DNA of 64,000 nt, taken from Marsupella aquatica. Taxonomy: Eukaryota > Plantae > Marchantiophyta. The stretch covers positions 1,263,573 to 1,327,572 of the forward strand of contig OZ316899.1 in the NCBI GenBank assembly GCA_973895155.1, in the 5' to 3' direction. The position numbers and the translations under genes are program-made. The notes beneath the pieces are model-generated. The model saw only the letters and a program-made list of their open reading frames with translations. It was not told the origin of the DNA and ran no database searches. Below, piece after piece: positions 3,591 through 28,676 of this stretch. Numbering within the stretch: position 1 is the first letter of the stretch; each line of letters starts with the position of its first letter.

Positions 3591-4270
3591 TATGAGGCAA
3601 CACTTGCTCCCTAACACGACCATTGCTCAACGGTCCTCACTATCTGCACAAGCAATCAAGCACTCTGGTAAGTAACCCCCAAAGGATCTAGAACTCAAAC
3701 TCAACAGACATTGGTAAGTAGGTCAGCGATAGGTCCTTCCGTTGCTATAAGCCAAAATTAGAGCCAATACCCATTGTTCGTCCAAAACAACTCCCTCTTT
3801 GGATGTAGCCCAGGTTCCCCCTTGTACCTATCCATCACCAACTCACCGCCTGCCCCCAAAACATGCTCATGGCCCAAGTAGCGTAGCTTGTTCTAAAGCT
3901 TGTCTCAACATGCCGGGACCACAATAGTCCTGACTCTAACAACCAACTCCCAGTTCTCACCCCACTAATAGCCTAGGGGCCAAGTGCACTTGGAACTCAA
4001 CCTCTATGCCTACTTGGCCTTTCCTCCCCAATGCAAGCTCCCTTAGGAGATTGAACACGGCTTGACTATTGTTTCAATAGGATTTGGCAAGCGGGCAAGA
4101 TAGCGGCCGCAAATCCCAAGAATCCATGGCACCCCTAGACCCAGCTAAGATCAGGAGGATGTAGTCCTCCTTGAGAAATTTCCAACGCACCCAAGAAGTC
4201 CTCCAACGGACTTCCCGTTGGGAAGTAATCACCATTTTCGTTTGACGTTTTCCCTTAGTGTCGCGACCGC
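3590..4270 (-). repeat. 3' part of an LTR of the chromovirus family, inverted relative to the element at 4271-11505
   Basis: The reverse complement of 4190-4270 matches 4920-5005 (gcggtcgcgacactaaggg...ttcccaacgggaagtccgttggaggacttcttgggtg). 3600-3780 matches 5425-5600 in reverse. Confidence 0.8.
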
Positions 4271-5742
4271 CGCAGAGTCGCGGAACTTGACTACCTTAAC
4301 ACTTAGCTCCAGCATTGCTGACTCCAACGCCGAGCTCCCTTATGGTCCAGGCCTAGATAGGCCATCTGGGGAGGACTTGGCATGGGGAGACTTGTGGGCA
4401 ATGAGACGTGGCACTAGCGAGGCAAGGAGCCAAGCTGGGGACACACACTGAGGACTTGGACCAGCTGATAGTTGGTCGGGTCAAGGGGAAATGGGTCGGG
4501 CTCAAGGATGGCCATCCGGACCTCTGGTGGACTTTGAGGTTCTGAGGGCTTGAGTGTGAGGTCCTCTTGGGCCCAAGGTCAATGGAGTTGACGCCATGGG
4601 CAACGGACACTTGGGGCGCAAGTTATGGCCCGATCCGGGTTGGGCCGGTTGGGGACACCAAGCGGCAATGACCTGAGGGCCTAGGCATGAGCACTGGGTT
4701 GGCCCAATCACAACGGGCTAAGGCACTCCACTTGCGGATGCCTAACAAGAGAGTTACGGGTGTTGCTAGTTGCTGGCGTGCCCATTATGCGCAATAGGAT
4801 CCGGGTTGGGGGCTAAATGTTTAGGGACCAAAGCTGGTCCGGAGGTGGCAGGTCTCCAGAAGCATATATAAGGGGAGTGGTGTCTCCCTGGGGGCTAAGG
4901 GCGAGCCGAAGTCGTGAGCCGCGGCGGTCGCGACACTAAGGGAAACCGCCAAACGGAAATAGCGATATCTTCCCAACGGGAAGTCCGTTGGAGGACTTCT
5001 TGGGTGCGTTGGAAAGCCCTCCTGAGCTCAGGTGGGTCTGGGGGCACCTTGGGTTCTTGGGGTTTGCGGGTGTTGACTCGTCCGCTTGCCAAATCCTTCC
5101 AAACAGCAGCCAAGCCGCGTTCAGTCTCCCAAGGGAGCTTGAGTTGGGGAGGCAAGGCCAAGTAGGTGTGGAGGTTGAGTCCCAAGAGAATTCGGCCCCT
5201 AGACCATCAGATGAGGCAAATCGGGAGTTGGTTGCTAGAGTCGGGGCCATTCTGGTCCCGGAGGGTTGGGACAAGCTTTAGGACAAGCTATGCTATTTGG
5301 GCCATGAGCATGTCCTGGGGTCAGGGCGGTCAGTTGGTGATGGATAGGTACAAGGGGGAACCCGGGCCGCGCCCAAGGAAGGAGCTGTCCTAGAGAGACA
5401 GTGGGCGTGGGTTCTAGTTCCGGCTTATTGCATCGGGAGGACCTATCACTGACCTATTTACCAACGTCTGTTGAGCTTGAGTTGGGATGCTAGACTTGGC
5501 AAATTCTGGATCCTAAAAGGTTACTTACCGAGGTGCTTGGTTGCTTGTGCAGACAGTGAGGATTGTTGAGTAGCGGTCGTGTAGGTGAGCAAGTGCAACT
5601 TTGTATGCGAGGGGCCGCTGGTGGTGCAAGAGGCACTTGGGTGCTTGCTCAAGGTATTCCGTGGAGGCGTTCGGGCACCAAGGGCACTTAGGCATGAGTG
5701 CTGGGATTGGTGAGGGCGCTGGGTGGCAAGGTCTACCACTTG
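4271..5742 (+). repeat. 5' LTR of the chromovirus element
   Basis: Direct repeat of 10095-11505. TATA-like gcatatataagg at about 4863. Ends immediately before the PBS. Confidence 0.85.
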
Positions 5743-5754
5743 TGGTATCAGAGC
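5743..5754 (+). promoter_or_regulatory. Primer-binding site complementary to the tRNA-iMet 3' end
   Basis: Exact TGGTATCAGAGC directly after the LTR. Confidence 0.9.
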
Positions 5755-5885
5755 GATTGGTGGCATAGACACCGGGCCGGGTTTGTGCTAAGTTGGAATC
5801 CAAAAATCTTAACAGATTTTTGTGGGGACTTAGTGCTTCAACATGCCCGGCGGGTCGACTGCGGGCAGATTTGGTTGTTGGGAAC

Positions 5886-7440
5886 ATGGCTAAAAACACT
5901 CGATCAAAGAGTGGCAAACAGGCTCCCCCCACCAAGGGGAGAGCCCAAGTTCAAGATGAACAGAAGGAGGACGGATCGACTTCCCTAGACGAATGTTACA
6001 AGCAGGATGAAGAAGACGCAACGGCTGAACCATCGACCGCTGTGGCGAACACGTTAAGTGCAGAGCATCATCGACTTAAAGGGAAGGAGGTGGTTGATCC
6101 TTCAGAGGATGGGTCGGATAACGATGACTCCAACGCAATTGGAAGCAAGGACGATGCTGAAGCGGAATTGGAGGAAGAGGGTCAGGACCCAGAAGAGGAA
6201 CTGATCCCAGCCTTGAGAGGGTTGAACGCGGAACCAAAGGATGATGTCAAGCCACACGTCATCGTGGATAATTTGACCAAGGAAAACCAGGGCGATGCGG
6301 GTGATGCCTCAGCCCCAGGAGGTCATGGTGCTTGCAAGACGCGGGGGGTGTCACCAAAATCCACAAGAGAACCTAAGGACAGGTGGCCCGCAAAGGAAAG
6401 ATGGTTGGAGGACCCTCCTCATACAACCCGCAAGGGCCCAGCCGCTGACGACGGTCTGGGTCCGTTGACTCAAGACCAATGACTCATTTATGAGCAGTTG
6501 GAACACAACAAGGGGGCCCAGATTAAGTACTTACTTAGTCTGGGTAGTTAGAGTGCAACGCATCCCGAGGGGGCAATGGTAGTTGGATGGAGTATGTTCC
6601 AAGTGAACCAGCTACCGACTCCTCCAACTTACGATGGGGCCTACGAGCAGAGTGGACAAAAGTTCTTGAGTTGGCTCTCCACAATGGAGATTCATCTCCA
6701 AGCATGTGTTGAGCATTCCACTTGGGCTATCGCAGCCGCTCCTTACCTGAAGGACTATGCCTTGACTTGGTACAAGTCATGGAAGAAGTCACGAGAGGAC
6801 TCCTCCTTGCCATTAACTTGGGAAAACTTGGTTGAGGGACTCTGTGCTCATGTCACCACTAAGTACCCGGAGCGGCACGCTCAGAAATGTGTAACGGAGA
6901 TGAGCTTCAGGGGTGATATCCAAAAGTTCATCACTTATTACCAAAACCAGTTGGCGTGTATCCCGGCGGGACAAGAGACCATACATACACAGCTTCACAA
7001 CTTTATCGTGAAGCTCCCGCCGTTGCTCAGGGAAAAGTTACAAGAAAAGCGTCATGAGTTCAAAACGCTTTCTGACGCCTTTGACATGGCCACTACGTTG
7101 GTGAATAATCGACCGGACTTGGCAAAGGCGGGTGGCAAGGGATCCGAGGGGGAAGATAGGAAAGCAAAAGGTCCCGGGAATAAGCGTAAGCAACCTGAGG
7201 GGGCGGGGGCTGGTGGTTCGGACCCCTAGCCCTAGAATGGTGAAGCTAAGCGAAACCGGAAGGCCGACAACCTCAAGAAAGGAACCTCATCGGCGCAGAA
7301 AGCAAAGAAGCAGGCACTCATGGAGCAGAGGCGGGTGGAAGGTTCGTGCTTCTGGTGCGGTGCCATGGGCCATCAAAGTAAGGATTGTTCCACGAAAGGT
7401 GGCAAGCCGAGCGGAGATGGAGGGCAGAAGAGCATTAAGG
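5886..7440 (+). pseudogene. gag of the chromovirus element (in-frame stops)
   Basis: ORFs 5793..6482 and 6576..7229 (PPTYDGAYE...FLSWL...LKDYALTWY...LTWENL, retrotransposon-gag-like). Zinc knuckle CFWCGAMGHQSKDC in 7320..7400. Confidence 0.85.
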
Positions 7441-7449
7441 TAAGTATCG

Positions 7450-7751
7450 CCTTGGGCCCAAGAGGAGCTCACACTCAAGCCGTCAGAACTCAAAGTCCAT
7501 CCGGAGGTCCGGATGGCCGTCCTTGAGCCCGGCCCATTTCCCCTTGACCCGAACAGCTATCTGCTAGTCCAAGTCCCTAGTGTGTGACCCTAGCTTGGCT
7601 CCTTGCCTCGCTAGTGCCACGTCTAATTGCCCACAAGTCTCCCCATGCTAAGTCCTCCGCGGATGGCCTATCTGAGCCTGGACCATAAGGGAGCTCGACG
7701 TCGGAGTCAACGACGCCGGAGCTAAGTGTTAAGGTAGTCGAGTTCCGCGAC
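7450..7751 (-). repeat. Inverted ~300-bp fragment of the LTR 5' end, replacing the protease and RT core
   Basis: The reverse complement matches 4277-4575 (gtcgcggaactcgactaccttaacacttagctc...ttgggcccaag). It is flanked by the gag knuckle on the left and RT thumb FLGFTGFYRRY on the right. Confidence 0.85.
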
Positions 7752-9372
7752 ACTTCTTAGGATTTACGGGGTTCTATCGGAGATACATGAAAGACTATGC
7801 AAGGATTGCAAGGCCCCTAAATGCGCTAACGTTGAAAAACAAAGTGTTTGTGTGGACACAGGATTGCAAGTTAGCATTCTTGGAACTTAAGCGGCTAATG
7901 ATAACGCCACCGGTTCTAAAGTTACCTGAGATGGGGAAGTCGTTCAAGATTTGGACAGACGCAAGTGATTATGCCATTGGCGCCTGTCTTCACCAGGACG
8001 GGCGTCTTGTGGCCTTCAAGTCATGTAAGTTGGAAAATCATTGGATCACACCGGAAAAGGAAATGTATGTTGTGATCTATGCGTTAAAGAAGTGGGAGAT
8101 TTACCTTAAGAACGGTCCCAAAGTGGTATTTCACACAGATAGCCCGTTGGTCGGGTACTTCAGTTCTAAGCCAAGACTGAACCCCAAGGAAATGTGCTGG
8201 CAGATGTTCTTGGCGGATTTTGATTTTGAAGTCCGCCACATTCCAGGGAAGACAAATATGGCAGCTGACGCGTTATCGCGTAAGGACCAACATCGTGTCA
8301 ATGGGATCACGATGCTTGAATCCAAGTGGCCAAAGGTTCTGGCCGCGGCGTATGGGGACGACAAGGTAGCTAAGGAATGGCAAAGCAATGGTTTCGGCCC
8401 GAGAGGTTGCCGGTCTAGTATTTGACAATGTCTTCCGACAATGGGGATTGCCGTTGCATATCCTGTCCGACCGCGATACCAAGTTCACGGGCCATTTTTG
8501 GAAGGCGTTGTTCTGGTTATCCGGAACAGACCTGACTAGGGGATCAACGTATCATCACAAGACAGATGGCCAAACGGAACAGGTTAATGGTATCATGGAG
8601 GACTACGTGCGTCACTTTGTGACGGCCAATCAAAAGGATTGGGCAAAGCATTTAACAATGGCCAAGTTTAGGTATAACTTGACCAAACATGCGGTGACGG
8701 GGTTTGCGCCGTTTGTGTTGGCCACAGGGAGGACGCCAAGGGCGCCCTCCTGGTTTATAAATCTAGAAGCTTGGCAGACGGAAAGCAAGGTTCTTTCTAC
8801 GGATGATTTTATTCGAGAGCGGCGCCTAGTTGTGGAAGCAGCTACCAAGGGTAAGACCTTGCCCAAAGTTGGTACAAGGAGCAAGGGGATAAATGTCGAC
8901 GCCAGGTAAGCTTTGAAATTGGGGAGAGCGTCTGGTTGCAGTTGAGACCTGAACAATACCACGGGAAAATAAGTAGGAAGCTGGCTCCCAGATATGCGGG
9001 GCCCTATCGCATTATACAATGGGCCCACAAGAATAATCCGGTTTTGGTGGTGTTGGAGACACCAAGGAAATGGGCGTGGGCAAAAGCTACCATGTTAACC
9101 GGCTCAAGAAGTTTGTCAAAGACGATGATCCCAACCGGGATTAGGTCTTGCGTCCGGACGCCATGCTGGTGGAGGACGCTGAGGAGTTTGAGGTGGAGGC
9201 AATTCTGGACCACCGTTGCAAACGCAAATTGGGAAGGCAAATTTTGGAGTACTTGGTGAAGTGGGCTGGCTATGACCAGGCCGAGAGTACTTGGGCACCG
9301 GAAGAAAATTTGGGTAATGCGTTAGAGATCCTTGGAAGCTATCGTAAGCGAAGCGGCCTACCGCCGTTGTGA
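7752..9372 (+). pseudogene. pol remnant: RT thumb, RNase H, integrase core, C-terminal chromodomain (frameshifted)
   Basis: RNase H: WTDASDYAIGACL...EKEMYVV...FHTD...FDFEVRHIPGKTNMAADALSR. Integrase: GLPLHILSDRDTKFTGHFW...HHKTDGQTEQVN. KLAPRYAGPYRII motif. Chromodomain: EFEVEAILDHR...EYLVKWAGYDQAESTWAPEENL (9148..9372). Confidence 0.9.
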
Positions 9373-9796
9373 ATTGGTACAGGCAGATGTAGCTACCTTT
9401 GTGAGTTGTATCCTAGTTTCACTCCTCTCGGTCTCTTAAGGATAAAGTCAGATTGCGTGGGTGCTAGAGATTGTTGGGCGGCCGATTTTCTTTTTGCGAG
9501 TGGAAGTTGATGGTGCCCGCCTTACATCTGTGGGCGGGCTAGTTCAAACCAAAGGGGAGTGCCCCAAGGGGAGGACAAAGGGTCTGACGAGTTTGGATTA
9601 ACTTACCCGTTTGGACTGGCATCCTACTTAGATAAGTGGGATAGGTTGGAATTTCCTAAGTTTGGAATACGCATACCAACCTGGTTTGCATCAGCCTTAT
9701 GGGCAAACCATTTGTTACCTCATAAAAATTTTAAGGCCCAAAGTGGTCTAGGCGTGTTGGAACGTTTACTGAGGTCACGCGGACGTGACCATTTTT

Positions 9797-9805
9797 AAGG
9801 GGGGG
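9797..9805 (+). promoter_or_regulatory. Polypurine tract
   Basis: AAGGGGGGG immediately followed by TGCAAGTCGCGGAAC, the LTR start. Confidence 0.75.
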
Positions 9806-10094
9806 TGCAAGTCGCGGAACTCGACTACCTTACACTTTGCTCCAACGTCGTTAGTTAGTCATGATGCTTAGGACAGGTGGACTCGTTGTTTCCAGGTTTG
9901 GTGTTTGGATGAGCCTCGTTGGTGGCAGCTGGCTGGGGCAAGAAAGGTGCTTTTGGAAACTACTTAAGGCTTGAGTTGCGGCTCATTGGGGTTGTTTGTT
10001 GTTCATTGTTGTTTGAGATGGTTCAAAGAGGTTTCAAAGTCTTAGAGATGATTTGGCTTGGATCTGGTGTTGGCTTTGAGATTTGAGTTTTAGG

Positions 10095-11505
10095 AGTCGT
10101 GGAACTCGACTACCTTAACACTTAGCTCTGGCATCGCTGACTCCGACGCCGAGCTCCCTTATGGTCCAGGCCCGGATAGGCCATCCAGGGAGGACTTAGC
10201 ATAGGGAGACTGGTGGGCAATGAGACATGGCACTAGCGAGGCAAGGAGCCAAGCTGGGGACACACACTAAGGACTTGGACTAGCTAATAGCTGGTCGGGT
10301 CAAGGGGAAATGGGCCGGGCTCAAGGATGGCCATCCGGACCTCCAGATGGACTTTGAGTTCTGAGGGCTTGTGTGTGAGCTCCTCTTGGGCCCAAGGCCA
10401 ATGGAGTTTGACGCCATGGACAACGGACGTTTGGGGCGCAAGTTATGGCCTGATCCGGGTTGGGCCTGTCGGGGGCCCCAAGCGGCGATGAGACCTGAGG
10501 GCCTAGGCATGAGCATTGGGTCGGCCCGATCACAATGGGCTAAGGCACTCCGCTTGCGGATGTCTAACAAGAGAGTTATGGGCGTTGTCAGTTGGTGGTG
10601 CGCCCATTATGCGCGATAGGATCCGGGTTGGGGGCCAAATGTTTAGGGACCAAAGCTGGTCCGGGGGTGGCAGGTCTCCAAAAGCATATATGAGGGGAGT
10701 GGTGTCTCCCTGGGGGCTAAGTGCGAGCCGAAGTCGTGAGCCGCGGCAGTCGCGACACTAAGGGAAACCGTCAAACGGAAACAGCGATATCTTCCCAACG
10801 GGAAATCCGTTGGAGGACTTCTTGGGTGCGTTGGAAAGCTCTTGAGCTCAGGTGGGTCTACGGGCACCTTGGGTTCTCGGGGTTTGCGGGTGTTGACGCG
10901 CCAAATCCTACCGAATAGCAGCCAAGCCGCGTTCAGCCTCCCAAGGGAGCTTGCGTTGGGGAGGCAAGGCCAAGTAGGTGTGGAGGTTGAGTCCCAAGAG
11001 GGTTTGGCCCCTAGACCATTAGATGAGGCAAATCAGGAGTTGGTTTCTAGAGTCGGGGCCATTCTGGTCCCGGCGGGTTGGGACAAGCTTGGGACAAGCT
11101 TTAGGACAAGCTACGCTATTTGGGCCATGAGCATGTCCTGGGGTCAGGGCGGCCAGTTGGTGATGGATAGGTACGAGGGGGAACGGCTTATGGCATTGGG
11201 AGGACCTATCACTGACCTATTTACCAACGTCTGTTGAGCTTGAGTTGGGATGCTAGACTTGGCAAGTTCTAGATCCTCAAAGGTTACTTACCGAGGTGCT
11301 TGGTTGCTTGTGTAGACAGTGAGGATTGTTGAGTAGCGGTCGTGTAGGTGAGCAAGTGCGGCTTCGTATGGGAGGGGCCGCTGGTGGTGCAAGAGGCACT
11401 TGGGTGCTTGCTTGAGGTATTCCATGGAGGCGTTCGGGCACCAAGGGCACTTAGGCGTGAGTGCTGGGATTGGTGAGGGCGCTGGGTGGCAAGGTCCACC
11501 ACTCG
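10095..11505 (+). repeat. 3' LTR of the chromovirus element (preceded by a 45-bp LTR stub at 9806-9850 and a foreign insert at 9851-10094)
   Basis: Collinear with 4277-5742, with scattered substitutions. It lacks the ~60-bp segment 5362-5421. Confidence 0.85.
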
Positions 11506-12140
11506 TGGCTTACGACTTTGGCTCACCCTTAGCCCCCAAGGAGACACCACTCCCCTCATATATGCTTTTGGAGACTTGTCACCCCCGGACCTACTTTGGT
11601 CCCCAAATTTGGCCCCCCACCTAGACCCTAACCTGCATGTCTAGGCACGCCACCAATAGGCTATGCCCATAACTTTATAGTTAGGTTTCCGCCGGTGGAG
11701 TGTCTTAGCCAGTTGTGATTGGGCCAATCCAGTGCTCATGCCTAGGCCCTCAGTACCCATCATCGCTTGGGGCCCCCAAGCGGCTAAACCTGGGTCGGCC
11801 GTAACTCATGCCCCAAGCGTCCGTTGTGCATGAAGTAAACTCCATTAGCCTTGGGCCCAAGAAGGGCTCTCACTCAAGCCCTCAAAACTCAAAGTCAGTC
11901 CGGGGTTCCAAACAGTCAACCCTAACTCCGGCCCTTTCCCATTACCCAACCAACCCTTAGCTAGTCTAAAGTCCTCTGAGTGTGTCACCAGTTTAGTGCC
12001 ACACCCCATTGCCCACAAGTCTCCCCATGCTAAGTCCTCCTCGGATGGCCGTTCCGGGCTTGGACCATAGGGGAGCTCGGCGTTGGATTCAGCGATGCTA
12101 GAGCTAAATGTTAAAGTAGTCAAGTTCCGCAACTCTGCTC
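11506..12140 (-). repeat. 5' part of an LTR of the same family, inverted
   Basis: The reverse complement matches 10095-10740 (gttgcggaacttgactactttaacatttagctc...gagccaaagtcgtaagcc). Confidence 0.8.
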
Positions 12141-14585: not shown

Positions 14586-15183
14586 AGAACACACTATGAG
14601 GAGTTTAGAATTGTAAAATTTGGAGTTAGTCCATTGCGGTTAAGGAAGGATACCTTGTCATGAATCGCTGAACCACATAATAATTGAACCTCATATCCCA
14701 ACACAGACAAGGGGGTGCATACATAAAAATGTGAAGGAATGCGCACAAAAATGGTAGGTCCCACCACAATCGGCAACAAAATATATGAAAATAATACAAA
14801 ATGAACGCAACACAAAACTTTATGGTATTATATGGTCCAAAATAAAAGCGAACAATGTCTTGACTAGCGCCTGGCGCTAGCTTACCGGTATTTAAGGAAA
14901 TAAATAGTTGGCATTGACAACATCAAGCACAACACGATGATATTTGACGGTGTAGCCTAAACGACAAAATTATCAGCGCCTAGCGCTAACAAAAACATGA
15001 CGCGACATAAATAACACTATACCGTTGACATACGACAAAATCAATATAACCGTTTGGACCGATAGGACAACCTAGATCATCATGATTCATGCTATAAACC
15101 ATGAGCATTTTGCCTCTCCAATATGAGCCGAACCTCTCCAACAGTGAGAATTGGTTGGCTGGTCAATGTAGATTCCTTAATGT

Positions 15184-18100
15184 CTAGTTTGAAAATGGTA
15201 AGGAAAATCCAATACAAATGTTGCAAGGCATATATGGATGTTTTCGAGAATGTCGCTGGTAGAAATCCTCACAAGAGCAAGTGGGGAAAATGCAAATTTG
15301 AACAAAGTAACAATTCGGCGTCCGCATATTTTTGTGCGTTTGCACCTTAAACTGCTTTCCCCATGCATTCCCAATCGCGACATCCCACTCTCCCTGAATG
15401 GACATCGTCTCTTTTTTTGCAGACACAATTTTGTTCATGCGACCATGGGTAAGAGTTGACCGAGGAACCGTATTCCTCCCATTCCGGCTTCGGAGACAAA
15501 CATTGGGTTCGAGAAGATTCACATTTTCTGGAAAGATATTGACATTGATTCGAAGATCAAAATCTGATGGGGGTCTAGTCGTACGTTCATTTCCACGGAC
15601 TAGGGAGATTCCGTTCTCAAGAAGATATTGCATCTCGTCTTCCAAAACATTTGTCCCTTTTAAAATGGGAAGAACATCAGGGAACGGGGGCAGGTTCAAT
15701 ACACCTCGACGCGGTCGGCTTCTGTAACATGTATTGTTTGGGAAAAAGCAAATCATTTCGGTTATGGGTTCCCCCTGAAAATGCATTGTCCTTTGACAAC
15801 AATGCCGATAACACCATGTGGTGAGGGAAATCCAACTTTTTTCACACGATTGCAACACTCGTCTCTTTCAGAATTACGGGCAAGCAATCCGTTGCACTGA
15901 GGACTAGAGCCAAATTTTGAAGTTTGACGTAATTGCCATGCAGTTGGAGCGACCTCGGTCTCACGGACAAGACATTCTTGTAACGGTTGCTGAAGCACAG
16001 AGGGAGCAGTCTGGGGAAGCCTTGTTGAACGCGTTCGGTCTTGAGTAGGAGGGGTATTGAAATCGACATCTTCTCCACCGCCCGAAATGTCACTTCCAGA
16101 CAGATTAACTACAGGAATAACTTGAGGCGTGGGTCTAGGGATAGCATCAAACGTCATGCGATTAAGATTCTTCCTTTTCATCGATCTAGTATTGGGCGAG
16201 GTGACAAGGATTTTATCATGCCTATGGGAGTCTTGTGGCGAGATATTCCCAGATGCATGTCCTTTCCTCTTCAAAGATTTGGTGACAACGTCTCCATTGA
16301 GAGGTGCTCGTCTCTCCAAGTCAAACTCGACAGCATTGGACAGTAGCATATTCATTGCATCTTCAAACAACTTGGGGGAGCCTGCCTGGTCCGCTGATCG
16401 GAAAGCGAGTTCCCAAATCGTGGGACCTTTTCCTCTATGCAACCCTTTCTGATACGCAGTGTAAGCAGCAACCTGAGAAATAGCTTGAGTTTGGTCCATT
16501 TCACATGCCTCAAAGAGCCCAACCTTTTTCTTCATTACCCATGCTTTCATACCTGCGTGCACGGACTCTGATCCTATACAATTAGGAATCTTAGCCCCTT
16601 CTTTGACACTCTTGTTCTGCAATTACATAGAATAAATTCCCTGTTACGCAACCAAAAAAACACTAGCGTTGGGCGCTAGAGAAGTGGAGTCGGTACCTAG
16701 AAGTAAAAATTGGCAATGTAGATTAAGGGACAACTTATTGTGTCCTATTTGTGTCATCTGACAGTTTGTGTAAATAATAGCGTCAGGCGCTAGTATTAAA
16801 GGATGCTATGGTATTGTAATATTTGAAGTTTACACTATCGATACAATCATTCTGTAATGAGAATATAGCACAGAAATACTTAAAGAGTGGAAAGGAAAGT
16901 AAAACAACTTACCAAACGAATAAAATTTCCCCATTGCCTCCACCTGACGACCCACCATGAAATCCAACTCTGAAGCATCCAGAGCTTCCCGAGGACACAG
17001 TTACCCGACTGCCACCACAAATCAATCTCCCTTGAAAGTCTGTAAGCCTCTACAAACGTGGGGGCATTTCGCATCTTATCCCAAAGCACGCGATGCTCTG
17101 CTTGACTCTCTTCAATCACTCCTTCAACTGAATGGCGATGGAAGGCTTGGTAGAAATGGAATGCGTCAGTTCGCTCACGCTCTGGGTTTGGATGCCCTCC
17201 AAAAAAGACGTTTCGGACTGCCAGCCATCCAGCTTGAGCATTGTCCGCCATGAATCCATGAATGATCGGATTTTCTAATCCATTATCCTTGGACACCTCA
17301 ATCATTAGTCTCCAAGCCTTCTCAAACAACTTTGTATCCTCTACTTTTAGTTCGTAGGTAAATAAGGTACACAGAGCGTGATAGTTGTCATCGTAAATAT
17401 GCGCGCTAAAAGTAACCCAGTCTTTTGTGAGTCGTTTCATCACATCAAAACTTACCCAAGCACCTTCGAGACTTCCACTAGGTTGCATTTGTCTCAAAAG
17501 ATTGACGCCTGATCCATGGCCGATCAAAGTCATCTTGAATATGTGAGGACGGTCATCTTGAGATCCTTGACCTGGTAGGAGGTACCTTTGGAGGAAAGGC
17601 ATGTTGATATTTCTTTGATACCGAACAAGAAAATCTATTTCACCTTGACCTTTCTGGTCCTGTCTAACACTACAAAAAAGGGACGCAAACTTTTGGGGTG
17701 TGGAAACTACCATGAGCGACTCAAATATCTTTGTTTCTTCAATATCTTCAATATCTTCCATACTTTCACACAAGGACTTTACAAAGGACCCTGTCGCAAC
17801 ATTTTTTACACCAACAGGGGTGAAAATTGGATTTCCTTCCAATTTCTTTTTGATAACCTCCTCAACAATCTTCTCTGCACTTTGAGAAAACACCTTTCTT
17901 GAAGGATGGTTGTGTATCCCCATATGAATCCCCAAGCGTGACATATGAGTAACGGTTTCTGAGTCAACTAGAACCTGAGGGTACATGTAAAATAAATGTG
18001 CTGGACAAGATTGGACACAAAATGGAACTTGATCACAAAAGTGGCAAACTACTCCACCTTCGTCAATGAGTGAACCAACATGATGTTGCCCGCCCAGTTT

Positions 18101-18914
18101 GGGGGTTCCAGCCCAGGCCTTTTGGTTCCTCCTTTTCTTCCGCCAAAAATAGTCGCAAGTATTATTCCTACCTCAATGGAACCAGTGCACGTTACTTTAC
18201 CAAATTCCCAATATTTCTTGGGATGAACATTAGCTGATGTAGGAAATATTCTGGTCCAGATCTAGCAATCCTTCAACCGGTCCATGTCGCGTAGACGTGA
18301 CCCCTTTGAAAGAGCTCCCGTCACAGGAGGCAACTCAAATACAATATTTCCATTGTATTTCTTTGGCAAGACTTGTTCATGGCGAAAGTCCCCAGCCGCG
18401 ATGAACCTTGAGATTTCACTGGAACCAGTTGACTTGAGAATGGTATCCATTGCACTTCTTCGATACACAATGGAATTCTTGGGAACAACAGTTGTAACCT
18501 CCTGTTTAACAGGGGTAACCTCCTATTTAACAACTGTGTGAGGGGGTTTAGCACTAGACTCAGGCAAACCAGAAGGTCCATCATCGTCGCTATCTAAAAG
18601 CAAGACAACATCAACAAAGGGTTTGGATGAAGATGGGAGATCGGATGCTACTGGTTTTTGAATGACAATAGAATACCAAATTCTTGCATTCAGGTGCCAA
18701 AAACGAATCCCGTCATCAACATCAAAAGAAGCAATGAAATTAGACGCTTCATCTCCATTTCCCTCCTCCAAATGTCCTCAATGTTGTTCAAATCCAAACC
18801 AAAGCGCCCACAGAGATAATTCTCACTAACTTGCTTGTAAACGTCATTGGCCGACAATGGAATGGATACAAGGTCACCAATAGACGGACGCGTCAGAATG
18901 ATTGACCTTGACAT
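15184..18914 (-). pseudogene. MULE-type DDE transposase with an N-terminal Cys/His (GCM/WRKY-like) Zn domain and a C-terminal SWIM finger; spliced and disrupted
   Basis: ORF 16880..17986: WVSFDVMKR...FSAHIYD...LCTLFTYELKVED...HGFMADNAQAGWLAVRNVF...ERERTDAFHF, matching MULE-domain spacing (D..D..CxxH-like). Upstream: VCHFCDQVPFCVQSC...HMGIHNHP. ORF 15184..15858 ends VQICIFPTCSCEDFY...YMPC (SWIM). Introns at about 16623-16905. Confidence 0.75.
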
Positions 18915-19846
18915 TGCAAGATCAGCCAGCCCAATTCACGATAATGAATGACGTCTTCAAACGTACACAATGGTATTCATAGTGAATAATCCGTTTGTCA
19001 GAGCCGTTAGAATACGACAGAATCACTACCGGGCGAAAGCACATCTGAGACAATAAATGTTTTTTGTCGTTATGTCAACGACATTTACACTAATGACCCT
19101 AAGATGTCCCTTTCCAAACAACATCATTATGTATATAAAATTACTGTAATTGAGTAGCGCCTGGCGCTACTCAAACATCCTCACTCCAACATGGACTGAA
19201 AATGTTTAGGGCCAGGCGCTACTCAAACCCACACCCTAAATTGTGGTATAAAACTACAATATTTTACCTGGGGTTTCAGGATAAATCCTAAATGTTTGTA
19301 TATATTTTACAAATATTATCAAAATATTGCCAAAATGGGGAGATTTAATATTAGTGTTGGGCGCTAATCTGAAATGGTAATCATGACATCCATTTAAGGA
19401 CAAATATTCAAAAATATGTATTCATTTTGTTTTTTATTTTCTACTTCAAAGTCAAATCTGTCTTGACTTAGGAGAAATTAGGGTTTAAATAGTGAGAGTT
19501 TTTGGTAGCGCCAGGCGCTACTATTGACCAATATGAGATTTCACCTATGAATATAGATTAAAATTTCCAAATTATTTATGTAATGGTCATATTCAACGGT
19601 AACGTTAGGTCGCGTAACGTTGAAGATATGCCAACGGTATTCCAACAACTAATCCAAAGTTGACAAGTGGTGCTCAGGAGAATGTTTTACATAGATATCA
19701 ATGTAGCGAGGGGATAGTTTAGAGATGATACTCTCTCCACCTTCCTTGTTCGTTGTATTTAGGTTCCGTTTCAGAGGTTATTTGAGCAAGAATTCTCTAG
19801 AAGAAGTACGGTATGAATGAGGTACTCATCACGATCGTGAAGCACT

Positions 19847-22800
19847 TTGTGTATGCAAAACATGGACCCTCTCCCCACCACCTCACATGGGTATACTGCT
19901 AACGGGCAGAGAGAGCAAATCCATTCCCAGACGTCGGAGTGCTCATTTTCTGGATCTATTTACAGTCATCGAGTGACACGGTCTACAGCATCCCAAGCTC
20001 CCAAAACAATCGCGGTTGTCACATTTCCAAAGAGCAGGAGAGCAAAGATGGACGATCTCGACACATACGCTGTGGAAGATCAAGGAGAAATGTCGCTGAC
20101 AATGTCCGATGTTATCTTGAAGCACGTTGTGTTGTTTGGCAAGGATTTTTGAGGGCACGACAAAGACTCACCAAGGATTCCAATGTGCCGCTTGGTTCAC
20201 ATGGAAGTTGTCCGCACCTTACAGAAGGGAAGTCCTTCAATTGAAAAGTTGAAGGACTCTTTTCGTAGCATAGGATATAACTCAAAAATTGGAATGTTGT
20301 TTTATGTCCAGCCGGCAGATTCGAATGGGAATGTCCAGACGTGTACTCCGGAAATTTGAACGACCTAGGACCTGATGTGGGTGGCCAAGAATGAGAAGTT
20401 TGAAGCTGAATGTGCGGCCGATCCAAACTTCAGGGTGTTACAGGATAAGATGTTTTACGTTTTTGACGGTAACCATCGACTTTACGCATGGTCGATGGTT
20501 ACGAAAGAAAATCTCGATGATATCAAGTATCACCCGCAAGTGCAATGTACTATTTTCAAGGGTGAAAAGGGATCTTTGATTGAGATTGAGGCGGCTATGC
20601 ATACTGTGAACCAGTAAGTCTCTCTTTGAATTTCAATGTCTCTTGTTCATAGTATGCTTTTTTACTAGCGCCTGGCGCTATTGACTGACAAATTCTTCTA
20701 TAGGCTTGGACAGGCCATGGTGGAACCTTCCTGGATACTTGATGCCGACCAAATTAAGAGGATTTTGTCCAACAATCTAGAATACTATAAGTCAATCATC
20801 GATGCAGAAGACTCGAAAAGGATCGTGGTATACCAAGAAAATGCCTCAAGAAGCACTTATGTATATCTTATGCGAGAATAAGATTAAATCCTATTCTCGT
20901 CAATTCAAGATGGACCTGGAGTCGGCTACCGCTCAAGGAAATCCTTGGTCTCAAGAAGAGACGTCCAAATGACATGCGGTCATGATGAAAGAAGCAACGA
21001 AGGATTGGGCGATCAAGGTCTCAAAGATCACTCCCTTGTTGAGTCCAGAGTTTGAAGACTTCATGACAACTTGAGCTGAGATGTACCCGATGACAGAGGT
21101 GAACAAACGTGAGAAGAAACCAGATGTGGTTGTCTGTACCATGGACCGTGCCAGGTTATTTACAGCAGTCTCCGCCCTCAACCCCAAATTGAGGAGCACT
21201 TTGTTAGTAGCGCATTGCACGCCAGAGCTCAGGAAGGAGTTCTTTCATCCGCAAAGCGTTAGCGATGACCTTGTGAAGCAGTGGTGCCACACATGGCAAA
21301 CTTGGAATAGCGTGGAGGGAATTGCCATTGGTATGCTGCAGACTGCCCTCCAGCAGATCAGTGAAATAATTCATTCCAACCGATTGGAGGAATGGAAGTG
21401 TGAGTCTTATGACTCACTCGTTGAAATAGTGTGCAATGATTTCAAAAAATTTGGGGATGCAGTGAAAGGTAAAGTTTTCAATACGATGTGGATGTCCAAG
21501 TACCCGGACAAGGAAGACTACACACTCAAGAATCAAAAGCGAGCGAAACGATATGTCTATTATTTCTTCATGCACATGGAGATTGTGAAGCCTGACTATT
21601 GCTTTCCAAAATTGGGTCATTTGCGTAGACGGAGACGTTTTGGCCGAACTGTATTTGATGTATCCCGCTGAGGGAATCCTTCCGCCGAGGAAATTGTCAG
21701 AGTGGGAGAGAATTCATTGCCCCTGGTATCTTGACACCAACAGATGGGATTCTCCTTTTGATGACACTGAGAAGGACGCTTTCCATAAGCTGTCCAAATC
21801 CCAAGTTCCGAGACAATTTGTCTCCAACATGAAGCAAGGAATTGAGGGAGACATCAACGTGTCGACAACTGAGTTGCAAAAAAAATGCAAAACCGTTGTG
21901 GTTCATGTTGATCAAAGCCAAAAACCAAGAGCCAAAGCCAAGGCAGATGCCCCCGTGGCAAGTGCTAGTGCCAAGTCTAGGAAAAAATGTAAGCTACACC
22001 TCCTTCTTTCGACTTCCTTCTTTGGTAGCGCCTGGTGCTATTATGTGTCATGAGTTTAATATGTTTTATTTCCCAAAATTAATGTTGGTGTTTGGCCAGC
22101 GCCTGGAGCTAACACTCTTTATGTGCTTGACACTATTTTTGGTAGGTGGGAAAAAATCTGATGCCACCACAGATGACACAAAAGTAGATGCAACACCAGA
22201 AGTCTCTGAGGCCAACACTGGTGCCAATCCAGACCCCATCACCCCCGTTGAGAAGGGGAAGGTTATAGTTCCTGTGGATGCTACAAGCACGACGGAGAAG
22301 AAGAAAAGGACCATCGATGCCTTGGAATCGTCACGAGATAATGCTTATGGGGCCGATATCCAACGGGATGTGGGGAATTTCAAGACCAAACTTGGAAGAC
22401 ACTATATGGTCGAATCAAGCTTGGCAGAATTCATTGATAGTGCATTTAGTAAGGAAGAGAAGCCAGATTGGGTTGCAGACGCTGAGAAGTGGGGTAAGGA
22501 TTTGATCAAGTCGGGGTGTAGAGATAAAGGAGTCATAAGAGGTGGGAAGGAATGATCATTTGGGGTGAATGTGGGTTTCATCTATCTCCCAACTGGTTTG
22601 AAACCCACAATTGTTGACCGTCGGGTCCCAAAATGGAATATAACAGATCACACAGCAACCGCATCGTTTTTTCGGGCGATGGATCCTTTCCTTTCGGATG
22701 ATGGCATGCTCGCCATCTTATACTTGGATGACCACGATCAGATTTCCCAGGTCATTTCAGCATGTCAGCAATCCAAGAAGTTCATGTGCATCAATATGCA

Positions 22801-23538
22801 CAATGTTTTCATGTCTGTCCCAATGTACAGATCCAAGACAGATGTCCAGGTAAATGTTCTCTCTGCGTATAGCTATACTAGCGCCCGACGCTAATATTTA
22901 TTTATTAGGAGGTCTTCTCGCATGACTAAGAGATTTTTAAAATCTAGTTGGTTTGTCTACTTTTGCAGGTCTTCACTCTTAGACTAGATATATTTTGTCA
23001 AGTTTCTTTTAAGGGAAAGGTCCCAAAGGATCCAAGGTTCAAGCCGTTGTCTAGCGCTGAAGATCCTTCAATCTCAAACCTTATTGGGCTACAATCTTTG
23101 AAGGAAGATCATTGTCCTGAACTCCATTTTACTGGGAATGCCCGACCACCGGTTGGTTTTATGCAAACTGTCCTTGAACTCTTTACGATACCTAAGGATA
23201 TTGTAATTGATTGGACCGTCGGCTCAGGTAGTACATTCATTGTTGGGGATTACTCGGACCGTTTTGTCATCCGGTTAGAAAATCGTCGGGAGTTTGTTGA
23301 GACCGCTTCGAGGATTTTTCTGGACCTCATTTCTCCCAAACCTTTGGAGACACAACCTCCCCCTCCTCAAATAACTAGACGAAAAAAGAAAGATAGACTT
23401 AGATCTGTCCTCAACTTTGATTTGGACGAAGATGATGGGACTCCAAAAGATGATAGTTCTGAGGATGTCAATGACGGTGGGAAAGAGGAAACCCGACATG
23501 AAGGGTCAACGGAGGATAGCGAAGAGTCTTCCGAGTAA
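19847..23538 (+). pseudogene. Spliced cargo gene: ParB/Srx-like N-terminal domain plus a C-terminal beta-class N4C/N6A DNA-methyltransferase-like domain
   Basis: One frame 19847-20613 (3 in-frame stops) reads IPMCRLVHMEVVRTL...LKDSFRSIGY...FYVFDGNHRLYAW. GT-AG introns at about 20614-20702, 21989-22143 and 22850-22968. Exon 22565-22849 has VGFIYLPTGL and FFRAMDPFLSDDGMLAIL. The last exon has RPPVGFMQTVLELFTIPKDIVIDWTVGSGSTFIVGDYSDRFVIRLE (motif X-I-II pattern), then an acidic tail. Confidence 0.7.
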
Positions 23539-25313
23539 TTTTTGTCTCTTGTAAGCTCCTTTATCCTTTCAATTGTTGGCTAACCTTCAATTCCACCGGT
23601 TCTATCGATTAAGTACTTACTTCCTCTTTCTCTTCCGTTTCTCTTTTGAGCAGGTCAGAATGGAACCAAAGAAAATGGTTTCAACTCCGGAGGAAAGTGG
23701 CTTGAAATGTAATCATCACTCCCGAGAAGCCGTTTGTGTTGCCATCATACGCTAAGAACGTCGCGAGGAAGGCAGAGAAATTTAGGACGCTCTGCTGGGA
23801 AACAAAAGGACTTAGGCTTCTTAGGGGAGTAGACAGAAAGTTCATGAGGAACCCCTACATAGATGATGTTTCTAGAAGCAAGTATATTGATGACGAGGCA
23901 GAGTTGACCGACAGATCTCATAGCTCCTAGAATGATAGCTTAGAATCTGACACTTAAGGGTAGCAATTTTCTCCTCTATCAACTATACCTCTCAATTGTA
24001 CGCGTATGCCCTTGGTTTTTGTTAGCGCCTGGCGCTATTGAATTTATTAAATCGGAATTAGTTTGAGGAAGATTGCCACTTCCATTCAGTGGTTAATGGG
24101 TTTGTCAAACCTGGTAATGGGGTCTTTCATAACATCCTTTGTGTGGGTTCCTCTCCTTGTTTAACTAGCGCCCGACGCTCCCCAAAATGGTACCCCCTAA
24201 AAAATAGGTTGGAAGTTTCCGTTTGAAATTTTTTTGTTTCCGTCCAATGGTCATTTGGCTTTCAGTCGGAGACTGGTACCGAGAAGAGGACCAATAATGA
24301 GAAATCCAAGTGCCTTATAAACATACTATTGTGTCTGGGATATCAAAACATTATCAGTTCCGCACATTGCTTGCTTCTTTCAAAGTCCATTGCACTCGTT
24401 TTTCTCCTTCTCGATTCCATGGAAGGCCATTTTGGAAGCTCCAATGTAGGGCCACATCCGGATCTTAATAACTCTGGTATTGTTAGAGATATGGGAATGG
24501 AGATTGGCGCACATAGGGTTATTGAAGGAGATCACGTTCTTCCCGTTTTGACTCACTTTACTTCATTCGAGACAAGGACTGAATCTGTTGAGACAAACCA
24601 CAGACTTTGTCAATCGCCTCCATCTTGCGCCGGATGAAGGTATCAGTCCCGGGGAGAGGAACATCCCTTGGCAGCGTGATGTTCCGTCGCCCCTGTTTAT
24701 GGAGAGGTTTTCTGTTCACCTGTCCGAACCCATGCAGGTGCCATTGCCTCTCCATCGTCAACTTTAGGAGATGTATGGACGTGTCGACTTTCAAGAACAA
24801 ATCTCCCAGAAGCGGGTTTTCGGAGACCAGTGTATCGACGGCCCACGAGAGCATATGTCAACTTCTGATTAGATGGTTTCCGCCAAGATCCAGATCGTCA
24901 GGATGCTGGGATTGACAATGACTGTCACTCTTCAAGCTAGGACATGGTACAAGGAAGCACCCACCGGGAGTATTAGCGTCTGGCGCTAGTTACAATTGTA
25001 TTGGAAACTTTAGTGTTTCTATGTAGCAATATTTGTACATCGAGGATAATATCTTTCACTTAAATAAAAAAGCTCAAGTTTGTTTTCTTTCAATTTCCCG
25101 TTTGAAATTCTGACTAAGATACATTGGTTAAGTCCTGCTTCTGTGCTTTGATATTGAACCTAGACTGTTAGAAATGTTTGGTTTCTATTTGGCTCTCAGC
25201 CTGAACATCACTCCTATGTTCTCGTGATTTGCTCCACAAAGCATGTGAAGCGCCCGACTCTAGTATTCGGCATGTTTGGGCGATTAATGTTTCATTATTT
25301 TGGGTTTGAACGT

Positions 25314-26032
25314 TGTCATGCCAAAAGATTTTGGCTCAGGAATGGCTTTTATAGGGGATGATAGGCGAGGCCTCCCGGTTGGGTTGCGTGCATGCTGACT
25401 CGGAGGGGCTGCTTGGTTGGATGGATTGAGGTTTGGTGATTGGGTGACTGGTCGTCACCAGGTTTGGTGTTTGGGTGAGTCTCAAGGCTTGGAGTTTGGA
25501 TGAGCCTCGCTGATGGCAGCTGGCTCAGGCTGGATGGTTGGGTTTCCGATGCTACTTAAGACTTGAGCCTCGGCTCATTGAGGTTGGCGGTTGTCTATGG
25601 AGATCTGTTGAGTTACGTTCTGTGAGTTCCGCTTCGTTCTGCAGAACTCGACTATTGTGCGGCAGTTTTGGAGTTTTGAACGAGTGTTGGATCCAGGTGT
25701 GGAGTTTTTGATCCAGGCCGGGGTTTTTCTCAAATTTGGAGTCTCATTGATCCAGGCGGGGATTTCTCAAGTTTGGAGTTTTTTGATCCAGGCGGGGATT
25801 TTTCTCGAGTTTGGAGTCTCGTTGATCCAGGCGGGGATTTCTCAAGTTTGGAGTCTTGTCAATCCAGGCGAGGATTTCTCAAGTTTGGAGCCTCGTTGGT
25901 CCAGGCCCAAGTTCCGTGTGAGCTATTTTAGACTAGTGGAGTAGCTAGTCGAGTTTTGGTTTTGTGAGCTAAGGAGGATAGTTTTTCCGTCAGATTTTGG
26001 GTAGTTAGTCACTTGAGGAGTTATACTCGACA
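25314..26032 (+). repeat. Putative 5' LTR of the second gypsy family
   Basis: TGTC...GACA termini. Segment 25455-25590 is related to the insert at 9890-10000. No partner LTR is in the window, so the ends are tentative. Confidence 0.45.
25690..25910 (+). repeat. Tandem array of ~36-39 bp units (GATCCAGGCGGGGATTTCTCAAGTTTGGAGT...)
   Basis: Unit starts at 25710, 25749, 25785, 25824, 25861 and 25898, plus a partial unit at 25690. Confidence 0.85.
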
Positions 26033-27213: not shown

Positions 27214-28676
27214 AAAGAGTGGATCGGCGGAGTGCTCGTTCCTTAGCTCCTTGTGAAGGGGAAAACACAATGGATAATGGAGAGGAAGAGCCACTCGAAT
27301 GTGCGGAGTCTAACTTGGGAAGGGACAAGCTGGAGAAGGAGTTGGAAAGGCAGTACTTGTCTATGGTCGTGCTTGTATACTCGAGTACCAAATACAAGAC
27401 GGTCGACAAGAAGGTGAGGCCGGCGGCAATACCTTTGCCGGACGATGCGATGGAGGTTATGGATCGAGCGAGATTGGAACTAAGGCTGAGGCCAACTGAT
27501 CGGATAGGGCATAAGTTTACTCAAGAGAGTTTGGCAAAGCTTAAGATTGGTTCGGATGGGTTACTTACGGAGGTGGAGCAAGTGGCATTTTGAAAGATGA
27601 TAATGGAGCATGGCAAGGGATTCTCATTTTTAATTGAGGAGATTGGTTGTGCGGACCCGAGTAAGGTAACACCGATGGTCATTTTTACTGTCCCTCATGT
27701 TCTGTGGGATCTGAAACCGATTTTGGTTCCGCGGGCTTTAGCTCCAAAGCTTGCAGAACTGCTTAAGGAGAAGCTGAGTGCTAGGATTCTCGAGAGGTCT
27801 GATGCTCCCTACTCGAACAAATGGTTTACAGTGAGAAAGAAGAATGGAAGCTCGAGGTTCATTCAGGATATGCAACCTCCGAACAAGATGACCATCAGGA
27901 ATGTGGGAGTTGGGCCACTCGTGGATGAGTTTGCAGAGGAGTTCGCTGGGAGGGCGATCTACTCCATGGGTGATTTGTTTTTGGGTTACGACCAGTTCCA
28001 GTTGGTGCAAGAGAGCCGAGACATTACGACTATGAGGACCCCGCTGGGCCTCTTGAGGATGTGCACTCTTCCTCAAGGGGCGACGAACTCAGTAGCGCAC
28101 ATGGAAAATGCGATGAGTAAAATCTTGGAGCCGTTCATTTTGGAAAAAACGAGACCGTTCATTGATGATGTCCCGATAAAGGGGTGCTTGGCTGAAGGGA
28201 AGGATGAGACCTTGAGGAGTGATGGGATCCGGCAGTTTGTGTGGGATCACATTGCGGATGTTAAGGCGGTTCTCAAGAAGCTGATTGATGTGGGAGTCAC
28301 TCTTTCGGGGGAGAAGTCTGAATTCAGGATGAAAGAGGTGAAAGTCGTTGGGCAAATGTGCGGATCTTATGGAAGGAAGCCGAAAATGGATAAGGTGAGA
28401 GCTATTAGCGAGATGAAGGATTGCAAATCGGTGCCGGAAGTTTGGAGGTTTTTGGGTGCTTGTGTCTTTTACAAGATCTGGATCCCTCACTTCTTGCACC
28501 TGGCGGACCCGCTCTATGAGCTATTGAGGAAAAAGGTTAAGTGGGGATGGCTACCCGAGCATAGTGAAGCAATGGCTAAGCTTAAGAGTGCTCTCATGAG
28601 CCCGCCAGTTCTCCGAGCTGCAAACAATGAGAGTGGGCGACCACTGATCATGACTGTTGATGCGAGTATAAGGTAA
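27207..28676 (+). pseudogene. Reverse transcriptase, truncated at the start of RNase H
   Basis: PYSNKWFTVRKKNG..RFIQD...YSMGDLFLGYDQ...LPQGATNS...PFIDD...FLGACVFY...PLIMTVDAS then a stop. Confidence 0.9.

Follow-up and report, generated by a model that had tools for sequence, protein, structure and literature searches.

A decayed ParB/methyltransferase-like gene in the liverwort Marsupella aquatica, probably the accessory gene of a Mutator-like transposon

Why would a plant transposon carry a gene that couples a ParB-like domain to a DNA methyltransferase (MTase)-like domain, and would the product of such a gene modify DNA? The question is raised by positions 19847-23538 of a 64,000-nucleotide stretch of Marsupella aquatica DNA (contig OZ316899.1; the whole stretch is called the window below), for which the original prediction proposed a prokaryote-derived DNA-modification module that has acquired introns and travels on a Mutator-like element (MULE). 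The copy in the window is a deamination-decayed, non-functional pseudogene of a high-copy family. It probably derives from the accessory gene of a MULE-like DNA transposon that is present in many copies, and the joint explanation that we favour, with similar confidence, combines this decayed accessory gene with an intact protein that would be a non-catalytic, palindrome-reading factor.

The sequence of positions 19600-23800, read together with the list of open reading frames (ORFs), gives a plus-strand unit of four exons and three GT..AG introns in phases 2, 1 and 0. Its parts are as follows.

19847-20613, plus strand: exon 1, a disordered N-terminus and then the ParB/Srx-like domain (about 20153-20613), which ends at the DGNHR block; stops at 20150-20152, 20357-20359 and 20366-20368.
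20614-20703, plus strand: intron 1, GT..AG, phase 2, with the palindrome TAGCGCCTGGCGCTA at 20666-20680.
20704-21988, plus strand: exon 2, a family-specific middle region of about 330-400 amino acids (aa); 26-nt net deletion at 20802-20803, stops at 20970-20972 and 21072-21074, second frameshift at about 21570-21625.
21989-22145, plus strand: intron 2, GT..AG, phase 1, within the Lys-rich linker, with palindrome copies at 22026-22040 (one mismatch) and 22097-22111 (two mismatches).
22146-22849, plus strand: exon 3, an acidic/basic linker and then the N-terminal half of the MTase-like domain, with FIYLPTG (22577-22597) at the motif IV position, then VPKWN, then the V/VI-like LSDDGMLAIL; in-frame TGA at 22553-22555.
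22850-22968, plus strand: intron 3, GT..AG, phase 0, with a palindrome variant at 22879-22893.
22969-23538, plus strand: exon 4, MTase motifs X-I-II at 23125-23307 (GFMQTVLELFT, DIVIDWTVGSGST, VIRLE), an acidic tail and a TAA stop.

The motifs quoted in the original prediction are all found in the sequence where it placed them, including VRTL..LKDSF..IGY at about 20200-20290, FYVFDGNHRLYAW at about 20455-20493 and FFRAMDPFLSDDGMLAIL at about 22670-22720. The three introns of the plus-strand gene that it described fit the reading frames, but it did not mention that the gene is broken, being interrupted by six in-frame stops (TGA at 20150, 20357, 20970, 21072 and 22553; TAG at 20366) and two frameshifts. 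The first shift takes frame 2 to frame 0 at 20802-20803, and the second takes frame 0 to frame 1 near 21570-21625. Other copies, seen in contigs of four public runs aligned to the window, have 28 letters in place of the two at 20802-20803, and this net deletion of 26 nt in the window exactly accounts for the first frameshift. The other copies also have C at 20357 and G at 20367, which give intact CGA and TGG codons, and the stretch that is EI*TT*DLMW in the window is EIRxxWDxxW in intact relatives; the R and W of these relatives identify the two window stops as CGA>TGA and TGG>TAG changes. Where the other copies differ from the window, C for window T or G for window A is commoner than the reverse. 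The observed/expected ratio of CpG is 0.69-0.73 in the window element, compared with 1.04-1.07 in intact Riccia elements. The stops, the frameshifts, the intact codons elsewhere, the C-to-T and G-to-A bias and the low CpG ratio together establish the decay by deamination.

RNA editing or recoding was considered as a source of the stops and rejected, because the 26-nt deletion and the second frameshift are present as well and two of the stop positions are sense codons in other copies. One CGA (Arg) codon has become TGA both in the window (20357) and in L001 (418-420), a 9.8-kb metagenome contig with a second degraded copy that is collinear with the window; the two copies are only about 58% identical in protein, and the shared TGA looks like an independent CpG deamination hotspot, not a shared ancestral lesion.

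Intact relatives define what the window copy once encoded. A word-based search with the last exon returned only two relatives, one of them on L001. With a profile built on the 80-aa DGNHR piece, a full HMMER scan returned 153 proteins, many of them exon-1 ORFs (about 250 aa) whose end coincides exactly with the intron 1 donor, and a C-terminal profile search added 35 further proteins, the named ones all from Riccia and several with a precomputed PF01555 match. Those of the named members whose records were consulted are annotated in the liverwort Riccia sorocarpa and in two ferns, Adiantum nelumboides and A. capillus-veneris. The family is present in high copy number: four runs, from two organisms, contain hundreds of contig pieces at 90-99% identity, and Riccia has dozens of paralogs on several chromosomes. 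By BLASTP, the whole window gene is collinear with the Riccia sorocarpa protein KAL3677308.1 (P0155, 1,207 aa). Piece by piece, positions 20375-20614 are 52-64% identical to the intact exon-1 ORFs P0003 and P0004, exon 2 is collinear with residues 325-622 of P0155 and with L001, and exon 4 shares 47-48% identity with P0001 and P0002 and 31% with P0155. The window and L002, the Riccia locus of P0155, agree in the position and phase of intron 1 (after AMHxxN) and of intron 3 (before [VI][FY]xxxx[DE][IV]FC); these spliceosomal introns are conserved.

The intact protein, as represented by KAL3677308.1, consists of a disordered N-terminus, a ParB/Srx-fold domain, a helical middle of about 330-400 aa, a Lys-rich linker and a C-terminal domain with the fold of β-class DNA amino-MTases. 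Searches of Pfam, of PDB profiles and of the atlas gave no fold or family for the middle region. Long ORFs are intact in Riccia, and although its paralogs share only 50-60% identity, the motif blocks do not vary among them; this speaks for some retained function. Three Riccia models (P0177, P0188 and P0098) have pieces of the family fused to unrelated domains (a profilin name, the plant peroxidase PF00141 and retrotransposon gag) and are probably chimeric gene predictions across nested transposable elements.

The N-terminal domain was modelled with AlphaFold2 on the relative P0004:85-249, which is 52% identical to the window piece, and not on the broken window copy itself; the alignment held 68 sequences. 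The model has a predicted local distance difference test (pLDDT) score of 95.4. Its best PDB matches in Foldseek are all ParB, KorB, Noc, sulfiredoxin (Srx) or SbnI, with probabilities up to 0.99 and weak E values of 0.03-0.3. VIA-align superposes 96 residues at 2.3 Å on the CTP-bound N-domain of Caulobacter ParB (7bm8) with a Z score of 8.8, and its 29 top rows are all of the ParB/Srx type before the score falls to Z 2.1. Among AlphaFold Database clusters the matches are ParB/Srx and DGQHR proteins, and they also include a 1,005-aa 'DNA methylase N-4/N-6 domain-containing protein' that aligns via its ParB-like part. The three classical blocks are visible as IPxCRL..VR, L..xF...GY...F.V and F.VWDGNHRL.AW. 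In the third, DGNH(R), the G, N and H are each at least 90% conserved among the 68 sequences, and the window has FDGNHRLYAW. A search of NCBIfam gave no ParB match, only a faint DGQHR match at E 0.2. The predicted structure thus supports the ParB/Srx assignment of the original prediction at the level of the fold, not at that of a Pfam family.

The C-terminal domain gives matches at the sequence level. The last exon of the window matches Pfam N6_N4_Mtase well beyond chance (E 5.2e-6; 27.0 bits against a cutoff of 26.7) over profile positions 162-219 of 221, and P0155 matches the same end of the profile under the cutoff (E 2e-5 to 5e-5, 23.7-25.1 bits); L001 gave no match to this family. A profile of 25 family sequences found 10 matches in the PDB, all of them β-class DNA amino-MTases, among which are CcrM (3.6e-4), M1.HpyAVI/DpnA (3.9e-4), MboIIA, PvuII, RsrI, rotifer N4CMT and TTHA0409. 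In CcrM, two collinear stretches are matched, one with motifs V/VI and one with X-I-II. The order of strands and helices in the AlphaFold2 model of this domain, which has low confidence, fits the class, and the top 43 Foldseek matches to this model are β-class MTases down to E 1e-9. A β-class amino-MTase fold in the permuted order IV-V-VI...X-I-II, as originally predicted, is therefore supported. Some Riccia models have the UniRef name 'Trimethylguanosine synthase'; identity with TGS1 was rejected, since the motifs stand in permuted order and every profile or fold match is a β-class DNA MTase.

The family differs from active enzymes at motif IV. At the end of the β4 strand, Riccia proteins have ADCLYLD[LM]P[ST]G followed by VPxWN, which lines up with the bacterial vDLIFaDPPYN...DWD, so that DPPY is replaced by DLPT or DMPS. 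The (D/N/S)PP(Y/F/W) motif is missing from the window, from L001, from 17 Riccia paralogs and from two fern proteins. In its place are FIYLPTG in the window, FIFLPKG in L001, D[LMI]P[ST]G in Riccia (D[LM]SS, without the Pro, in two paralogs) and VDLPTR and IDFPIG in the ferns; in the subfamily of the window, [YF]LP[TK]G, the Asp is also lost and is a Tyr or Phe instead. Motif X is kept in the family, as are motif I, of the D-x-F-x-G-x-G type, and the acidic residue of motif II (DIVIDFAGGWGAT...IVAE in Riccia, DIVIDWTVGSGST...IRLE in the window and LELGAGTGP...VID in a fern). The paper on N4CMT sorts amino-MTases by SPPY, DPPY, NPPY and DPPW, and the change of SPPY to APPA abolishes the activity of the rotifer enzyme (PMC8885841). 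Judged from these motifs, binding of S-adenosylmethionine (SAM) by the family is plausible and canonical methylation of base amino groups, to N6-methyladenine (6mA) or N4-methylcytosine (4mC), is unlikely; the DNA modification envisaged in the original prediction is accordingly doubtful.

Next to this gene lie the remnants of another.

15187-18522, minus strand: transposase gene remnants, divergent from the ParB-MTase-like gene, in ORFs 18522-18265, 18172-16883, 16622-15765 and 15867-15187.

These remnants contain an intron at about 16623-16882 with two palindrome copies and at least one frameshift near 15800. Their ORFs are 39-43% identical (E 1e-95 to 1e-99) to ORFs that lie 5' of Riccia ParB-MTase-like genes, at L002 for P0155 and at a second locus, L003, for P0041. 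The head-to-head pairing with a homologous transposase-like gene is thus found at all three loci (window, L002 and L003), and homologs unlinked to the transposase, which would have spoken against residence on a MULE-like element, were not what these loci gave. In Riccia the ParB-MTase-like partner in such a pair is intact (1,207 aa), and the transposase ORFs are long (417 and 635 aa). L002 and L003 have no detectable DNA similarity, yet they share the same two-gene arrangement. The transposase can be called MULE-like by its atlas features, which are nearest to the MULE, ZSWIM1-3 and FAR1 clusters and score 0.89-0.91 for MULE and ZSWIM1-3; against Pfam it gave ZSWIM1-3_RNaseH-like at a weak E of 0.18 and left the MULE family unmatched. 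Terminal inverted repeats (TIRs) of about 55 bp enclose both genes at L003 (1110-1164 and 16020-15957, a span of 14.9 kb), and a weaker pair is present at L002. For the window element, neither TIRs nor a target site duplication were detected, and its ends were not found. The L003 TIRs start with GTAACATATCAGCC and hold a perfect palindrome of their own, TTGCTGATATCAGCAA, which is AT-richer and unlike the internal GC-rich arrays. Beyond each end of L003 there is a copy of an 18-nt direct repeat, CCCTTGATCCGGKGGTGA, which is non-adjacent on the right side, and no clean target site duplication could be read.

A second feature shared by the loci is an array of palindromes in their non-coding DNA.

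14865-24988, no strand: span of all copies of the 15-bp palindrome TAGCGCCWGGCGCTA, with 13 sites at 14865, 16664, 16778, 19155, 19207, 19506, 20666, 22026, 22879, 24023, 24166 and 24974, plus a two-mismatch copy at 22097.

This palindrome gives 22 strand-matches where 0.01 are expected. All of its sites are non-coding, none lies elsewhere in the 64 kb, and CpG transitions distinguish several of the variants. At L002, CCAGCGGN3CCGCTGG recurs in both flanks, where its period is about 68 bp, and is found once in the probable intron 2, and the shared promoter contains CCGGCGAN3TCGCCGG. The palindrome of L003 is CGGCGGN3CCGCCG, found in the same three clusters and again in intron 2. The equivalents of intron 2 carry a palindrome of their own locus, at 12454 in L002 and at 12367 in L003. 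L001 has two copies of TTGCCAGCN5GCTGGCAA. Overall, the palindromes are element-specific, N3-spaced and GC-rich, and occupy the flanks, the shared promoter and intron 2. At L002 14353-15163 and 8509-9370 and at L003 8448-9210 they are regularly arrayed in tandem, with periods of about 68 and 95 bp, in the manner of short satellite-like repeats with a palindromic core.

On the reading that we favour, the intact protein would bind both DNA and SAM and would be non-catalytic or, at the least, non-canonical. The ParB-like part, acting as a dimer or as a nucleotide-dependent clamp, would recognize the palindromes of its own element, and the protein may regulate or protect that element, either by anti-silencing or by help in assembling the transposition complex. 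Such a role would be functionally analogous to that of VANC in VANDAL MULEs or of TnpA in En/Spm. The co-variation of the palindromes between elements is the basis of this functional proposal and is circumstantial.

Several observations weigh against this reading. The protein and the palindromes are tied only by their co-occurrence, and the transposase could bind the palindromes instead. The ParB-like and MTase-like parts are placed on one mRNA by gene models only: P0155, P0041 and P0157 join both domains and P0159 and P0170 run across the linker, while many other Riccia models split the N-part from the C-part at the linker into neighbouring locus tags. The public-run contigs that match the window are only short repeat fragments; they contain no spliced joints that skip an intron and gave no transcript support. 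For the ParB-like domain, no Pfam family, ParB_N (PF02195) included, matched the window pieces, L001, P0004 or P0155:140-340 at E<1, and a PDB sequence search with profiles of the ParB piece returned no ParB, only chance matches such as galectin and eL24. The AlphaFold2 model of the C-terminal domain has a pLDDT of 55.8 and a predicted template modelling (pTM) score of 0.59. Finally, the conserved D-x-P-x-G might allow catalysis of an unusual kind.

A more specific form of the preferred reading is possible, and we put it forward tentatively. The family would be a self-recognition module of liverwort and fern Mutator-like elements, in which a ParB-type nucleotide-dependent clamp and a SAM-binding pseudo-methyltransferase read co-evolving, element-specific, N3-spaced palindromes and either keep the promoter and ends unsilenced or assemble the transposition complex. 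This module would be built from a phage-type ParB-methylase and would be convergent with VANC and TnpA.

The palindromes could also be ordinary subterminal and promoter repeats that are bound by the MULE-like transposase, and the ParB-MTase-like protein would then act elsewhere, on host silencing factors or on chromatin independently of sequence. We think this unlikely, although the palindromes do cluster in both subterminal regions, like the transposase-binding repeats of many DNA transposons, and the atlas and PDB-profile searches gave no assignable DNA-binding helix-turn-helix in the accessory protein. Against this reading, the TIRs of L003 hold a motif different from that of the internal arrays, and the palindromes also lie in introns and in the shared promoter. 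ParB-family proteins, moreover, typically act on palindromic sites.

An active N6A/N4C DNA MTase, guided by the ParB-like domain to methylate the GC-rich palindromes of its own element (with CCWGG or CCGG-like cores) and thereby mark or shield it, is closest to the original prediction and appears improbable. The conserved SAM-binding motifs X, I and II and β-class fold would suit such an enzyme, as would the D-x-P-x-G that liverwort and fern proteins have in common at the motif IV position; the symmetric palindromes resemble MTase target sites, and fusions of ParB_N and N6_N4_Mtase exist in phages (atlas cluster; PMC4738411). However, PP before an aromatic residue is absent from every member, the Asp has given way to Tyr or Phe in the window subfamily, N4CMT is inactive once its SPPY is changed to APPA (PMC8885841), and the Pfam score, at about or under the gathering cutoff, comes from the X-I-II end only.

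MULEs capture fragments of host genes, and the window and L001 copies are both degraded, but a passively captured, Pack-MULE-like passenger with no role for the element is very hard to reconcile with a two-gene arrangement that recurs at L002 and L003 despite their dissimilar DNA, an architecture common to liverwort and fern proteins, long intact Riccia ORFs with invariant motif blocks, and conserved intron positions.

The remaining features of the window lie around the element. One directly follows the gene.

23736-23930, plus strand: small downstream ORF with an LPxYA...PY[IV]DD motif, homologous to the extra C-terminal tail of Riccia models P0041, P0162, P0164, P0165 and P0167.

This ORF matches L002 14061-14279 by tblastn at E 3e-5, and the tail block is also in the family alignment. 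The segment just 3' of the stop reads LPxYA...PY[IV]DDxA and then an acidic SSDEE, and it is spliced onto the C-terminus in some Riccia models; this segment could be either an alternative last exon or a separate small gene. Just past the last palindrome site, positions 25694-25906 contain a short tandem repeat (unit about 37 bp) that translates as repeated IQAG(I/V)F/SQVWS. Upstream of the element, positions 3692-12138 contain complex direct and inverted repeats of 300-1,100 bp that are 78-95% identical and may be nested or rearranged sequences like long terminal repeats. The surroundings are rich in transposable elements, with RVT_1 at 27597-28676, RVT_1 and zf-RVT of the long interspersed nuclear element type at 48896-51874, and a PIF1-like helicase ORF (Helitron-like) on the minus strand at 61492-62619.

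To place the family, we compared it with known systems. The closest in architecture are the ParB_N + N6_N4_Mtase fusion methylases of phages and plasmids (ParB-Tls locus type), which are likewise borne by mobile elements and also have the ParB/Srx domain N-terminal to a β-class amino-MTase (atlas cluster; PMC4738411). Unlike these, the present family is eukaryotic, has conserved spliceosomal introns, a middle region of about 330-400 aa and a Lys-rich linker, shows D[LM]P[ST]G or [YF]LP[TK]G for DPPY, and lacks a sequence-level match to ParB_N. The review by Iyer et al. lists ParB-HTH+Dam (with a helix-turn-helix, HTH) in chlorophytes and chytrids and a haptophyte clade, and the present family is absent from that list (PMC4738411). 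The prokaryotic origin proposed for the module is plausible from this architecture, but no bacterial or phage donor was found: tblastn against phages gave only weak matches (E 0.005-0.06) to assorted phage adenine methylases, and a scan of viral contigs gave none.

In function, VANC of the Arabidopsis VANDAL MULEs would be the closest analogue. It too is encoded by an accessory gene in the Mutator superfamily, with short element-specific motifs that are arrayed in non-coding DNA and differ between related elements (PMC5735166 and PMC10398659). However, VANC is structurally related to MAIN and described as dicot-specific (PMC13547354), whereas the folds here are ParB/Srx and β-class MTase. Bdelloid rotifer N4CMT and Marchantia DN4MT1 are also eukaryotic proteins with β-class amino-MTase folds, and N4CMT structures occupy Foldseek ranks 19-23. 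These, in contrast, are host genes and not transposon-borne, and their products have a catalytic SPPY, were shown to make 4mC (PMC8885841; bioRxiv 10.1101/2021.02.12.428880) and have no ParB domain; no kinship of the present family with either that is closer than the shared fold was detected. DndB/DGQHR-domain proteins, in the ParB/Srx superfamily, resemble the family in that DGNHR is similar to DGQHR and DGQHR proteins are among the AlphaFold Database structural matches and the faint NCBIfam match, but the sequence match is only at E 0.2 and their context is bacterial DNA phosphorothioation. METTL14 is a catalytically dead MTase partner, and the present family may be compared with partners of this type, which keep the MTase fold with a degenerated motif IV; METTL3-METTL14 chains appear lower in the Foldseek list, although METTL14 belongs to another MTase class (MT-A70). 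In the literature on ParB with Mutator-like elements or liverworts we found no description of the present family, which is apparently undescribed.

Transposon-encoded counter-silencing factors are known in very few cases (VANC and Spm TnpA), and the present family would be a second, structurally unrelated candidate with a clear cis-element partner, the palindrome arrays that differ between related elements. The host group belongs to the early-diverging land plants and has an unusual DNA-modification biology, such as 4mC in Marchantia sperm, and the apparently intact Riccia sorocarpa copies make the family directly testable. In summary, an architecture of the phage ParB-methylase type appears here as an intron-bearing eukaryotic gene that has lost the canonical catalytic motif. 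This feature bears on how often eukaryotic 'DNA methylase' annotations represent real writers of 6mA or 4mC.

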